Shown here: in pieces, positions 1,812-34,200 of the stretch | Layout: every line of letters starts with the position of its first letter | Numbering within the stretch: the first letter of the stretch is position 1 | Assembly (NCBI GenBank): GCA_965644265.1 | Contig: OZ286461.1 | Span: 43,214,001-43,278,000, forward strand | Direction: 5' to 3' | Source: Glycera tridactyla | Taxonomy: Eukaryota | DNA length: 64,000 nucleotides | Notes under the pieces: model-generated | What the model saw: only the letters and a program-made list of their open reading frames with translations | Told to the model about the DNA's origin: nothing | Databases searched by the model: none | Made by a program: the position numbers and the translations under genes

Positions 1812-4800
1812 TAATCCCTCACTCACTCAATCAATCATTCAATCAACTTACCCCACTGCCCATCAAAGAAGATCTCAATGCGTCCTGAGAGTTTGTCGCC
1901 GCCAGCCAGGCGTATATCTCCATTCTCTGCCCTCATAGTGGGGTCTGAGCACTCCACTCCTACATCCTCCTCGTGTATACAGTTATGTGAACCCCATTCC
2001 GGGTGTGAACAGTTAGAGATGGGTACAGTATAGTAAGGACACTCCATATCATCCAGCCAGATCGGCCCTGTGGGTGTGAGGACACTATTAGCTGAATCAT
2101 GCGATGTTGTGGGATCAAGTAGTGTGGGGAAAAACAAATGAGTATTCACACAGAATTGCCCATTTGAGAGAGATTCTGTGTGGATATCTGCAGGAGACAT
2201 GGTAGAATAAGAGAAACACTGATTCAAACATGTTTGTGAAGTTTGTTCAAATGTTGAGAGGTATGAGGCAATTTCACGGTGCCTAGTAGGTGCAAGTTCA
2301 TCTCCGCTGTGATTTGGCCATGTTCACATCTGCAATACAAACTACGAATACTAAAAGTCCAGTATGATGAGACCCCTATGAAATTTGATTTTTCTTCTCA
2401 TTGCGCGAGATTGTGTATCAATGGAGAAAGATATATCGGAGTAAACTAATGTTTTGAAGATGTGTTTTTCTGAGACAAATCATGGTTGAAATGATTTGAA
2501 ATATGACTGTGAATTCTAACCTGTACCGCCGCCATATTCTTCAATCACGCTGACGTCATAATAGCCAAGCCCCATCTGTCGGCAGACTGACTGTGCTGCT
2601 GCCTGGTTGAATAGATCGTCACACACCGTGCCTGAAACAAACACCTCTTGTATTTCTTCCTCTTTTCTCCCATGGTACAATGAAGCTATCACATGTTTCC
2701 ATGACAAATATCGAGTTCATCAATGGAAAGTCGGATGACCATATGAATTACTATTTTTTTTGGATGATTTATTATGTCTGTGGGTTTTTAGGTAATGAAT
2801 TGATTGGGCCATGATGTTACTTCGACCTATGCTGGAAATATCCCATCAGCCAGGACATGGACAACATTCCATTGACTCAACAGGCTAGGGGCCAGCTTAT
2901 TGCTGTATGACTCGCGCGAAGCGATTGCTCGTTGATGATATTAGACTGAATTCAATGAAAGTCCTTTTCGACACCCCACAAGAGTAGTCAGTGAGTTGAT
3001 ATTTGAGCTTGAATCCTGGAATGATCATGGGATGATCATACCCTTGAGATGCTGTAGTAGGTGAATTGAACAACTCACCCCATTCGCCATTATGGTAGAT
3101 CTCCACCCTTCCTCGTAGATAGGAGCCGACAAGACGGACCTGCCCCTCAGATCCAGGGTCTGGGTCGTTTTCTGAGCAGCTAATACCCACGTCCTCATTG
3201 TGGCCACAGTTATGAGAACCCCATCCACGGTGGGTACAATCGCTTACCTGTGGAATATAATGCACTGATATAACCTCCATTATCTGTCTCTGGTACAATC
3301 CTAAGATTCCATTGACTTTTCCTAGGTGCTCCAGACTTCAGCCTTTTCGACTCTCATGATGCACAACGCCCAGAACACAGAGTCTGTATAATCACTCACT
3401 ATAAGTCTCAGGGTGGTCAATTAGGGCATATGAGATAAGATAAGATGAGTTTATCGCATAGGGTATAGATGTCACAAGAGACCAAAGCTGGTCATGGTAC
3501 ATGCTTATGCAAATAAAAGTAAAAGGATATGGAAATCACAACACAAGAGAAAAAATTATTCACCGTATGTTCTAGAGATATATACTTAAAGTATACATAC
3601 GGTAGTAAGGAGGCACAATCAACAGTAGTTATAGTAGGCTGTACATATCAGTTGCTTGTAATTGGTTGGCAGACTAGTCATGTAGAATATGTTGTAATAA
3701 GACAACAACAAATGAAAGTATGCAGCCAAACCATATACGCAGACCAGCCTTGATTGCATCAAAAAGTGGTCTTGGTAGAGAGACGGCCTTTGTGGACGTC
3801 ATTCATGGTGGACACTAGTATCATTCTATAGGGGTGGTCTCTCTCGAGCAGGTATATGATATGCTCAGTTCTGTTAGCAGTGTTCCCTGATATGGCCGAG
3901 GGCAAGTACGCTTGTGTGTGTGTATGCATGTGTGCGTGGAGAAGCTGCACTGGTGATGCCTCTGTAATTGACAGGATACATACGGTTCGTGCATCTTCCG
4001 GGCAGTCCAGATCGTCGAGCCAGATTGGCCCCTCACCTGGCTCCACCTCGTGGACGACTGATGCGAATGATCCGAGCCCCATCTGCCGGCAGGAAAACGC
4101 AGCCTCCTCCTCACCAAAGTTATCGTCACAAATCGTACCTGTAACGTCAAGACTGCAGACTTTAAGATCGACTGACATGTGTTGCATAAATTATTCACAT
4201 CCCAATTGTTTTTTTGCAGAGGATGTTACCCTGAAATGTGATGATTGCAGACTGTCTATGTGACAAAAAAAAATGTGCGGAAACAGCAGAAGCCATTCAC
4301 TGATTCTCTCATGTGACAATCATCTAGTAAGCAATTCACAAATAGACCAATGTCGAGTTTGACAATTTCGTACTGTGGCTGTTCATCAGTTTGGGATGAC
4401 GTCAGGTTCGGATAACCCCTACAAAATTCCAATCATATTTGAACCATATATACGATAATTGATCTATCATGTAGGTCCGTCTTGAATGCTCATTAGTAAG
4501 TACATGTATTCATTTCAACACTCGACTTGTGCCATACAGACACGCAGTAATGGTTTTGCTTCTACATAAAGGTCACTACCTATTCGGGAGAGGAAACAAT
4601 GTTTTTTTATAATAGCACTGGGCCATTACTTTTCTGGAGCAAAGCAAAGCATTTCTTTGCACTGGAATCAGCGATTCTATGCTCACTGAACAATGGTGAG
4701 CTTCGGAGTGACTATATCGGGTACAGATTGAATTTAAGAGAGAATTTATACCAGGTCAATGCAGCCCAGGACCACCAGCTTGATATGAATGGTTTAATGA

Positions 4801-31200: not shown

Positions 31201-34200
31201 CCAAATGATTTCATTGCAGATAGCCTGCCCGAAATTTTCAAAAGGTAGTGTTCATATCATGATTTATGTTTATACAATCCATCGATTGCTTGAGAAATTC
31301 AGGCCTTCGGCTCATTTGTCACACAGAATGGTTTCCATGTAAACATATATGTCTTTGATTTTAAAATGATTTGACGTTCCCATCAGGGGGTCAAGAAGGT
31401 TGTATATGCATGGAATATACAGATACACTAAAGTCACGGAATACATGTACATGACATAGAAATAGACATGAGTTACACACCACCAGGGCTGGACAATGGT
31501 GCGAGCACCTTTCTGGGATCCAAAAGCAATAGCTCAACGTGAGGGGTGGCACTGTAATGAGTGACCACTGACCAGCTACAATGATATCCCTCTAAATATA
31601 CACACACATATGCAAGCACAGGAGGGAAGAGTTCAAAATTCAATCACAGGTAGAGGGTGATGCCCTGTCAAGTTCCGAACTGAAAACAGACTCAGGAGGT
31701 CAGAATCGTCTCAGCTGTATCATCGGGCTGATACAATTTATCAGTCAAAACTGTCGATTAATAAAACAAACCGGTTATAGGCCTCTCCAATAGAGGTGGC
31801 GAAATTTGACAATTCTCAACCTAAACCGATTTCACAGTAAAATGACACCGGATAAGTGTGTGAATGGGTATGGTGGTTGGGTGATTGGTTAGTTGTTTTG
31901 CGTCCCGCAAGTATATTACTCCATCTGCCAGAGAGGTCAAACAATCAAACGGAGACATTCATCACTCTTCGGAGGTCCTGATAAAGTGAAGAAGTATGTG
32001 GAGTCCATGCAGAAGTACATACCGAATTGGTTGTCATGGCAGATTTCGACTCTTCCCTCGCCTGGGTAGGTACCGGCATCCTCGGCATCGTTCACCAGCC
32101 TGATCTCGTACTCGGTGCTACACAAGGAATTCTCGCCGTAGTCACAGTGGACGCCGATGTCCTTGCTGTGCTCGCAGTCGTGAGCGCCCCAGCCCGAGAA
32201 GGCACACTCGCCGATATTGTCCTCTGTACCCAGACAGGCAAGTTCGTCCATCCATATAATGCCCTCGCCTGGGTCCACATCCTCCTCGATGAAGCCGCGG
32301 ACGAAGCCCAACTGCTTGCAAATCACTGTAGCATCACTGTCATCGAAATTGTCCTCACATATCGTGCCTGAAAGAGAATAATAATAATGCTGATAATGCT
32401 AATAATAATGGTAATATTGCTAATAANNNNNNNNNNNNNNNNNNNNNNNNNNNNNNNNNNNNNNNNNNNNNNNNNNNNNNNNNNNNNNNNNNNNNNNNNN
32501 NNNNNNNNNNNNNNNNNNNNNNNNNNNNNNNNNNNNNNNNNNNNNNNNNNNNNNNNNNNNNNNNNNNNNNNNNNNNNNNNNNNNNNNNNNNNNNNNNNNN
32601 NNNNNNNNNNNNNNNNNNNNNNNNNNNNNNNNNNNNNCTCCTGCTCCCTTGTGTTCGGGTAGTTCTCTCTTGGTTGACTTGGTTGAGGTTCTCTCTTGGT
32701 CGACTGGGATACCGAAATCAAGCCTTGTGTATGGGAGTCTATTCTCGTATCAACGTATAAGAACCACTGCTGTCCTTCTCACAGAGTAGGGTCTGCCTAC
32801 GCTAGCGGTGCCTCTTTCCGTCAGCAATTGCAGCTTCTCAGTCTGATATAGACCAAAAAGTTTGAAATGACACTTAACCCTAACAAAGGAACGAACGATG
32901 AACTTCACAATGGTTGACTCACCCCAGTATAGAGCACCGTGGTCCGTGGCGTGACAAACTTCCACCCTGCCAGTCTGCTCGTCGCCACCTGTGAGTCGGA
33001 GCTCTCCATCCAGGTGACATGCCAGTTCCGCATTGTATTCGCACGTGATACGCAGGGCTTCATTCACCGAGCAGTCGTGTGTGTCCCACTCGGCCAGTGT
33101 ACAGTCCGAGATGCTTCCCTCCGTACCGACACACTACAAGTAGAAATACACCATTAGCTGACTCGGCGTTTCATTTTGCGCCTGAAATCTGACAAAATGG
33201 AAGGGACACTGATTTGTGTTCGGTGACATTTGGAGTAGTATGAGGCAATTTCCGGGCGTCTCGCATGTGGGAAGCCATCTCAGCTGTGATGCGACCATGC
33301 TCACATCTGCATGCAGGCTTCATGCTACGAATCAGCCAATCACAGAAAAATAAACATGCTTGGAGAACCCTTTCATCATATGATTTTTTTTATTGCGAGC
33401 GAGAAGTGTGATAATGGAAAATAGTTGGTTAGGGAGCAAACGAATGTTCTTAACATGTTAATTTTCTGGATACATCAATCATGAAATTACTCAAAATATA
33501 ATGATAGTTTCTAACCTGTACTCCATCCAACACGATCGGCACATCCTCCTCCTCCGAAGATTGGGATTCAGATGAGGATTCAGATGAGGATTCTTGAAGC
33601 AGTTCTCCGCCCGTGAATCCCATCTGCCTGCAGAGCACTTGCGCCACCTCCACTGTGACGTCATCGTCACAGATGACACCTGCGAATTAGGAATACACCG
33701 AGACCCGGCTATCATCCAGAGATTCACTATTGACCTGACTATATTCTGGGATTCGTTTGGAAGTCGACTTTCACTCTCTTGCTTGGTTGGACGTGACGTG
33801 AATATTTGTCAGGAAGGACGGTCGTTTCTCTCAATTATATATAGGCTTATAGTAATGGGATGCAATGCTACGTTCCTGAGATGTTTCGAGTTGGAGTAAA
33901 CTGAGGACTGAGAATGATAAGTGAAGTAGATCAGGCAGTTCTAGCGGAGGATGATGAGTGAAATAGATCAGGCCGTTTTAGTGAGAGACAGATCAGGCAC
34001 TTCTGGAAGAGCATGATAAGTGAAACAGATCAGGCAGTTATAGGCGAGAATGATAAGTGAAACAGATCAGGCAGTTCTAGACGAGCATGATAAGTGAAAC
34101 TTGATCGTTCTGAGAACGAGTTAGTTCTCAGATCAACACTACACAATCTCATTCCAAATCGGAAGCTCTCCTTCGACACATGCCATTGAAGTTGGCTATT

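Follow-up and report, generated by a model that had tools for sequence, protein, structure and literature searches.

Two introns in SRCR exons

How new spliceosomal introns originate in animals is still argued, and few clear cases can be traced to another intron. A stretch of 64,000 nt from Glycera tridactyla (contig OZ286461.1; 'the window' hereafter) raises the question directly: two of its SRCR-coding exons are split, at different codons, by introns that begin with the same heptamer, GTTAGAA. Was at least one of these introns, called A and B below, made by copying an existing sequence into an exon that had no intron there? On the alignments presented here, we consider it very probable that the pair represents a true copy-type intron gain, and the narrower statement, that copying accounts for the gain of one of them at least, is well founded.

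The two introns and their flanking exons are listed here in window coordinates, the sign ^ marking a splice position. In the sense of transcription, intron A runs from 2520 to 2068 and intron B from 33515 to 33134. Positions, strand, phases and junction peptides of both introns agree with those of an earlier note on this DNA.

2068..2520, minus strand: intron A, 453 nt, GGTACAG^GTTAGAA ... CCCACAG^GGCCG, phase 1, splits GGGTG^PIW
33134..33515, minus strand: intron B, 382 nt, AGTACAG^GTTAGAA ... CTTGTAG^TGTGTC, phase 0, splits PIVLDGVQ^CVGTEG
2521..2631, minus strand: exon A-up, 111 nt, ends ...GGCGGCGGTACAG
1852..2067, minus strand: exon A-down, 216 nt, starts GGCCGATCTGG (G-PIWLDD)
33516..33679, minus strand: exon B-up, 164 nt, with a Ser/Glu-rich insert, ends ...GGATGGAGTACAG
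32923..33133, minus strand: exon B-down, 211 nt, starts TGTGTCGGTACG (CVGTEG)

About 28 SRCR units were found by tblastn on the minus strand, from about 51.3 kb to the start of the window. The standard exon extends from GT(V/I)CDD of one domain to ...EWG of the next, is in phase 1 at both ends and measures about 330 nt. Predicted splicing joins GGTACAG to GGCCGATC for intron A, and GTACAG to TGTGTCGG for intron B; both modules are then in frame (111+216 = 327 nt and 164+211 = 375 nt), have correct cysteine spacing and form complete SRCR units. Retention of intron A would bring an immediate stop (TAG inside the donor), and retention of B a stop after 22 codons. The Ser/Glu-rich insert of exon B-up is in part a 12-nt tandem repeat (33564-33593), and the unit measures 375 nt instead of about 330.

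The window contains 19 runs of N (gaps), none of which touches the two introns or their four flanking exons. Intron A lies in the gap-free block 1-5440 and intron B in the gap-free block 32638-35392. Nine gaps separate them, so that the distance of 31 kb and the shared orientation depend on scaffolding.

The two positions differ and are empty in the other complete modules

The two intron positions are offset by 26 nt in the domain alignment, at both the protein and the nucleotide level, which reproduces the distance given in the earlier note. The end of exon B-up (CCGATCGTGTTGGATG...) is homologous to the start of exon A-down (CCGATCTGGCTGGATG...), and the offset is therefore real at the nucleotide level. 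Both sites are uninterrupted in every other complete module (tblastn). The claim that all other modules are intronless at these sites was thus borne out for the complete modules; three other modules carry extra introns at other codons (see below). Counterparts of the sites before insertion can be pointed to within the same array: GTGCAG^TGTGTC in the intronless module at 19914 for B, and ACAG^G in the intronless modules at 24974 and 16632 for A.

Transfer or inheritance of an intron at a homologous position is contradicted by the 26-nt offset. A variant of this idea would be one ancestral intron that was multiplied by module duplication and then displaced, by sliding over 26 nt or by gene conversion between paralogues. 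The hosts are indeed paralogous SRCR modules in tandem genes. They belong to different module subtypes, however, and the process would be expected to keep the position; here both ends of the intron are homologous and yet the exon flanks are displaced by 26 nt, a number not divisible by 3. We find this explanation scarcely credible.

The homologous unit is the whole intron

Introns A and B are collinear from the first intron base (GTTAGAA) over 260 nt of A and 278 nt of B, with 65% identity and a Kimura two-parameter (K2P) distance of 0.48. The earlier note had described homology from the GT donor over about 300 bp; the start at base 1 stands, while the length has to be reduced to 260/278 nt. 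Compared with dinucleotide shuffles, the stretch from donor to core scores z = 14.5, and still 12.5 once the GTTAGAA heptamer is removed. The core itself, A 187-260 against B 205-278, is ungapped, is recovered by blastn within the window with an E value of 1e-10, and includes a 36-nt block (32/36) and an identical 15-mer. As an empirical control, the first 220 nt of 22 window introns were compared in all 231 pairs: A/B scored 99, the next best pair 57, and the median was 6. The segments concerned are the following.

2261..2520, minus strand: 5' homologous arm of A, intron positions 1-260
33238..33515, minus strand: 5' homologous arm of B, intron positions 1-278
2261..2334, minus strand: 74-nt ungapped core in A (A 187-260), 77% identical to B
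33238..33311, minus strand: 74-nt ungapped core in B (B 205-278)
2068..2097, minus strand: last 30 nt of A, TCAGCTAAT.GTGT (branch-site-like, 14/16 block), pyrimidine tract and AG
33134..33163, minus strand: last 30 nt of B, in register with A, tract mismatches mostly C/T

Between core and acceptor the sequences are not alignable (193 nt in A, 104 nt in B). The final 30 nt before the AG are again in register without gaps: 19/30 positions are identical, including a 14/16 block (permutation P < 5e-5) that covers a branch-site-like motif, CAGCTAAT. The C/T mismatches in the terminal tract are those expected if a pyrimidine tract has been kept under constraint. With homology in register at both the donor and the AG, the homologous unit is the whole intron, from GT to AG, and zero exon bases were gained or lost. 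The proposal of the earlier note that the element's terminus supplied only the 5' splice site does not survive this result, the 3' end (branch-site-like motif, pyrimidine tract and AG) being homologous as well. The 74-nt core also gives a hint of third-position changes in one sense frame, the substitutions being too few for a test.

One intron-bounded unit thus occupies two non-homologous AG^ sites that were apparently uninterrupted before, which argues for at least one gain by copying. A and B appear to descend from one intron-sized sequence that was copied, with its splice signals, into a previously uninterrupted SRCR exon site. Since the unit carries its own branch-site-like CAGCTAAT and pyrimidine tract, it is predicted to have been spliceable on arrival.

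Could one ordinary repeat have entered two unrelated introns that were already there? The window offers a precedent, which also served as the control for an ordinary repeat within introns: a dispersed repeat of about 300 bp (34560-34850, 15195-15509 and 11179-11511, that is, at 34.6, 15.2-15.5 and 11.2-11.5 kb) is found just inside two standard introns and in one place without an adjoining SRCR exon, with its ends off the splice sites. Ordinary repeats of the window sit at arbitrary points in introns and intergenic DNA, unlike A and B, in which homology is in register at both splice sites and no unrelated remainder is left at either end. Secondary insertion would in addition need prior introns at two positions that are otherwise unique among the approximately 28 modules, and we regard it as very improbable.

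Target site and traces of insertion

The exon flank 5' of both donors is GTACAG, and the downstream exon flanks are unrelated. This hexamer corresponds to ordinary module codons in both genes (G-T-G in A, V-Q in B), and it is therefore part of the target and not of the insert. Intron A has ACAG(G) both before its donor and at its end, which the earlier note had likened to a target-site duplication (TSD). The repeat is present in A, but in B the corresponding pair is ACAG and GTAG, of which only the obligatory AG agrees, so that the likeness is limited to a single copy and no convincing TSD exists across the pair. Given the obligatory AG, the chance that the repeat of A arose by itself is about 1 in 16.

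Other traces of a mobile element were looked for. Neither intron has terminal inverted repeats (TIRs; seed 6), and no autonomous partner is found in the window, two features for which the earlier note had asked. Its remark that no transposase is visible agrees with the Pfam search, which gave no match for the open reading frames of the element. The core matches no RNA family in Rfam, no tRNA-like head was detected by ARAGORN, and no conserved hairpin or fold was found in the core; folding of the whole introns is no better than that of shuffles (z = 0.20 for A, 0.07 for B). A search of the window with blastn and an nhmmer profile gave no third copy and no copy outside exons; A and B remain the only copies within the 64 kb, each inside a coding exon and in sense orientation. 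Two pattern scans of metagenome collections and two of viral collections, which are not expected to hold this genome, returned chance matches only.

Intron gain by tandem duplication of an AGGT-containing exon segment was considered and is excluded, as the introns have no similarity to SRCR coding sequence (tblastn of SRCR modules, best E = 0.24, hence no coding relic).

The GTACAG flank bears more directly on double-strand-break repair (DSBR), in which filler templated from the neighbouring paralogue would have been primed at this microhomology. The 6-nt match at the 5' junction, a template available in a nearby paralogue on the same strand, and the short direct repeat of A, which resembles those of DSBR-type gains (PMC3443670), would all fit. 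However, copying would need to end exactly at the AG; had it run on into the homologous exon, the 26 nt that code for PIWLDD would be duplicated, and no such duplication is seen. Nor would DSBR explain why the donor recurs, as GT[T/C]AGAA, in two further introns of the array. We therefore judge this route improbable.

Three further extra introns and an unusual donor

Three other modules carry an extra intron, each at another codon.

37351..38942, minus strand: extra intron C, from 38942 to 37351, GCAG^GTCAGAA, phase 2, splits ...TDC-S^FQGWG, holds a repeat resembling a miniature inverted-repeat transposable element (MITE)
21882..24917, minus strand: extra intron D, from 24917 to 21882, CAAG^GTTAGAA, phase 0, splits CPYNK^EALSEC
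3248..3983, minus strand: extra intron E, from 3983 to 3248, AACC^GTATGT, phase 0, splits CPEDART^VSDC, ordinary donor, unrelated sequence

The five extra introns fall within one module stretch of about 35 codons, in one gene pair, and the sites of A to D are all AG^ protosplice sites. Introns C and D have the rare GT[T/C]AGAA donor, as do A and B. A pyrimidine at position +3 is found in 4/5 extra donors and in 0/22 standard donors, all of which have a purine (Fisher P = 2.8e-4). GTTAGAA occurs four times on the minus strand of the window: at the donors of A, B and D, and once inside D. This last copy, again as CAG^GTTAGAA, lies 29 nt inside intron D (24888-24917, minus strand), and its use would shift the frame; it may be either a duplicated donor or a nested second insertion.

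Beyond the donor heptamer, none of C, D and E can be aligned to A or B. The start of C, GTCAGAAAAC...TCAAATCAT, had suggested a relative of A/B, but C and D both had to be rejected, with alignment z scores below 1. Intron D contains a gap (22596-22725) and large repeats. The same process may nevertheless have produced C and D at an older date, only the GT[T/C]AGAA donor being retained. The clustering of the five extra introns, together with the shared +3 pyrimidine, points to a local, transcript-linked process.

How the copy may have been made

Two routes deserve serious consideration, local intron transposition and an introner family, the latter being the main rival. The likeliest, which we put forward tentatively, is local intron transposition through RNA. 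An excised intron RNA of the SRCR cluster would have reverse-spliced at an AG^ site, whether in its own transcript, in a read-through transcript or in that of a paralogue; reverse transcription of the product and recombination with the gene would have followed. Intron transposition is recognised as a mechanism but has seldom been documented (PMC3443670). Three sets of observations favour it here: the limits of the unit are those of an intron, to the base, and transposon hallmarks are lacking; both copies are exonic and in sense orientation, with no stray copies nearby; and the extra introns are concentrated in a single part of one gene family, whose genes stand in tandem.

The arrangement of the genes is compatible with such a route. 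Introns A and B would lie in two tandem, co-oriented, head-to-tail paralogues, gene A downstream and gene B upstream, as indicated by a signal-peptide exon between them. With this arrangement on one strand, both sites could be included in a single read-through transcript.

8194..8406, minus strand: signal-peptide first coding exon of gene A, marks the start of the second gene

This exon codes for the signal peptide and then the first half of an SRCR unit, and about 5 kb separate it from the final SRCR exon of gene B (13468, ending in a stop), which lies upstream.

Several points weigh against an RNA route. A passage through RNA or a reverse transcriptase leaves no visible trace in the sequence. 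That both introns have the 6-nt flank GTACAG would not follow from spliceosomal reverse splicing; a target preference or microhomology at the DNA level fits it better, and the ACAG(G) direct repeat in A resembles a TSD. Neighbouring standard introns have been kept, so that only 'partial recombination' of a cDNA would fit. The count of two copies covers the 64-kb window only, and many dispersed copies elsewhere would favour a transposon. Splicing of A and B is itself predicted from sequence alone.

These points lead to the main rival, a non-autonomous, introner-like DNA element whose termini coincide with splice signals and which would have inserted independently at GTACAG^ in two SRCR exons, C and D being older, decayed members. 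A DNA-level introner would better explain why A and B share the target GTACAG, why ACAG(G) is repeated in A, and why D has an internal CAG^GTTAGAA, whose CAG cannot be accounted for by selection for splicing. The recurrence of the rare donor heptamer in 4/5 extra introns also speaks for it, and many described introner families have no clear TSDs or TIRs (PMC9860276). On the other hand, four insertions in one stretch of about 100 nt of one gene family are unlikely without special targeting, TIRs are missing and so is a TSD in B, neither a third nor a non-exonic copy lies within the 64 kb, and the metagenome and viral collections gave no match, although this genome is not expected there. On balance, this rival seems to us possible but rather doubtful.

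The filters of Gozashti et al. (2022) allow a more formal comparison. They ask for similarity that starts within 5 exonic or 10 intronic bases of both boundaries, at least four similar introns, and dissimilar host proteins. In A and B the 5' ends are identical from base 1 and over 6 exonic bases (GTACAG), and the 3' ends agree at 19/30 positions up to the AG; such end-anchored similarity at both boundaries is the key mark of introners. Both hosts are multi-SRCR genes, though the inserted codons are non-homologous, and the family counts two copies in the window where four are required, which leaves the pair outside two of the published filters. A and B should not be classed as an introner family on present evidence, though they are introner-like in behaviour.

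Of the interpretation in the earlier note, an introner-like family inserted independently into two SRCR exons, part can be kept. The copies are homologous, lie at non-homologous codons, are anchored at the donor and interrupt sites that were apparently continuous before, and at least one independent gain by copying is indicated. The transposon nature of the unit is not supported, with no TIRs, a TSD-like repeat in A only and no third copy in 64 kb.

When the copying took place can be stated only roughly. The divergence suggests an event tens of millions of years old; at an invertebrate rate of 4.4e-9 per site per year (PMC12130899), a K2P distance of 0.48 corresponds to roughly 50 million years, to be read as an order of magnitude. 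Searches for close relatives or orthologues recovered three weak matches with the protein of exon A-down. With exon B-down, an exhaustive search reached 45% identity at best, the relatives being scattered (Priapulus, scallop, gecko, metagenome). No orthologue and no annotated product of the locus was recovered with either exon.

Other repeats of the window

A palindromic, MITE-like repeat of about 270 bp occurs at 37395-37659, 46542-46808, 58900-59171 and 59498-59781; the copies are 77-85% identical, each is self-complementary, and one lies 43 nt upstream of the acceptor of intron C. A large composite repeat with several sub-repeats (22756-24187 against 54372-56989, 74-88% identity) takes up a large part of intron D and is found again downstream of the SRCR array. 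Long tandem arrays are present at 36278-36794 (57-nt period), 10123-10677 (50 nt), 41502-42140 (about 53 nt) and 51834-52302 (82 nt). The 57-nt array has an open frame on the plus strand with a 19-residue repeat rich in Pro, Ser and Thr.

Significance and comparison with known systems

The locus provides a clean pair: both limits of the copied unit are known to the exact base, and paralogues with empty sites stand beside the filled ones. The array holds three further module-specific introns that have the look of older products, and the rare donor is found in two of these. Combined with the whole genome, RNA-seq and related species, the locus could serve to separate local RNA-level copying from a transposon family, and to date successive gains within one gene. 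As a copy-type gain it would be a rare, well-bounded animal case, and its interest would rise sharply if a genome-wide family were found. The strongest form of that possibility is that the GTTAGAA unit represents a bona fide animal introner family, outside the two animal groups from which introners are known, one which inserts at CAG^, brings its own donor, branch site and acceptor, has split SRCR exons repeatedly (A, B and the decayed C and D) and has many copies elsewhere in the genome. We consider this unlikely.

Introners, as known from Micromonas, Aureococcus and the 548 families of Gozashti et al. 2022 (PMC9860276), resemble A and B in occupying non-homologous sites with a shared sequence bounded by splice sites, in being spliceable on arrival and in their sense orientation. 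That survey found them in two animal groups only (PMC9860276). A and B differ in that two alignable copies are known, in paralogous neighbour genes, with no TIRs and no consistent TSD. Their unit carries both splice sites, whereas introners bring one and co-opt the other through the TSD. They are also old (K2P about 0.5), whereas introner copies are near-identical.

The introner-like elements (ILEs) of fungi likewise form an intron-bounded repeat family. They degenerate into ordinary-looking introns (PMC3609843), as C and D are here proposed to have done. ILEs number hundreds of copies and are predicted to have a stable secondary structure (PMC3609843), in contrast with the fold z scores of 0.20 and 0.07 for A and B.

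Transfers of the Chironomus globin type and gains of the Daphnia DSBR type share with A and B the involvement of paralogous genes and a short direct repeat at the ends of one copy. The Chironomus type concerns a homologous position, whereas A and B are offset by 26 nt; and an exact match to a whole intron, as in the A/B unit, would not be expected of DSBR filler.

Intron transposition by reverse splicing is matched in that a newly gained spliceosomal intron shows homology to another across a unit bounded by the splice sites, occupies an AG^ site that apparently had no intron before, and lacks the marks of a transposon. A difference is the 6-nt exon flank common to A and B, which this mechanism does not predict, and published cases are mostly recent, with higher identity than A and B. 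Indirect cases have been described in Oikopleura and in Mycosphaerella/Zymoseptoria (PMC3443670), and a 2012 review counted 14 clear events, none shown in vivo (PMC3443670). With these resemblances and differences, A and B match the description of intron transposition.

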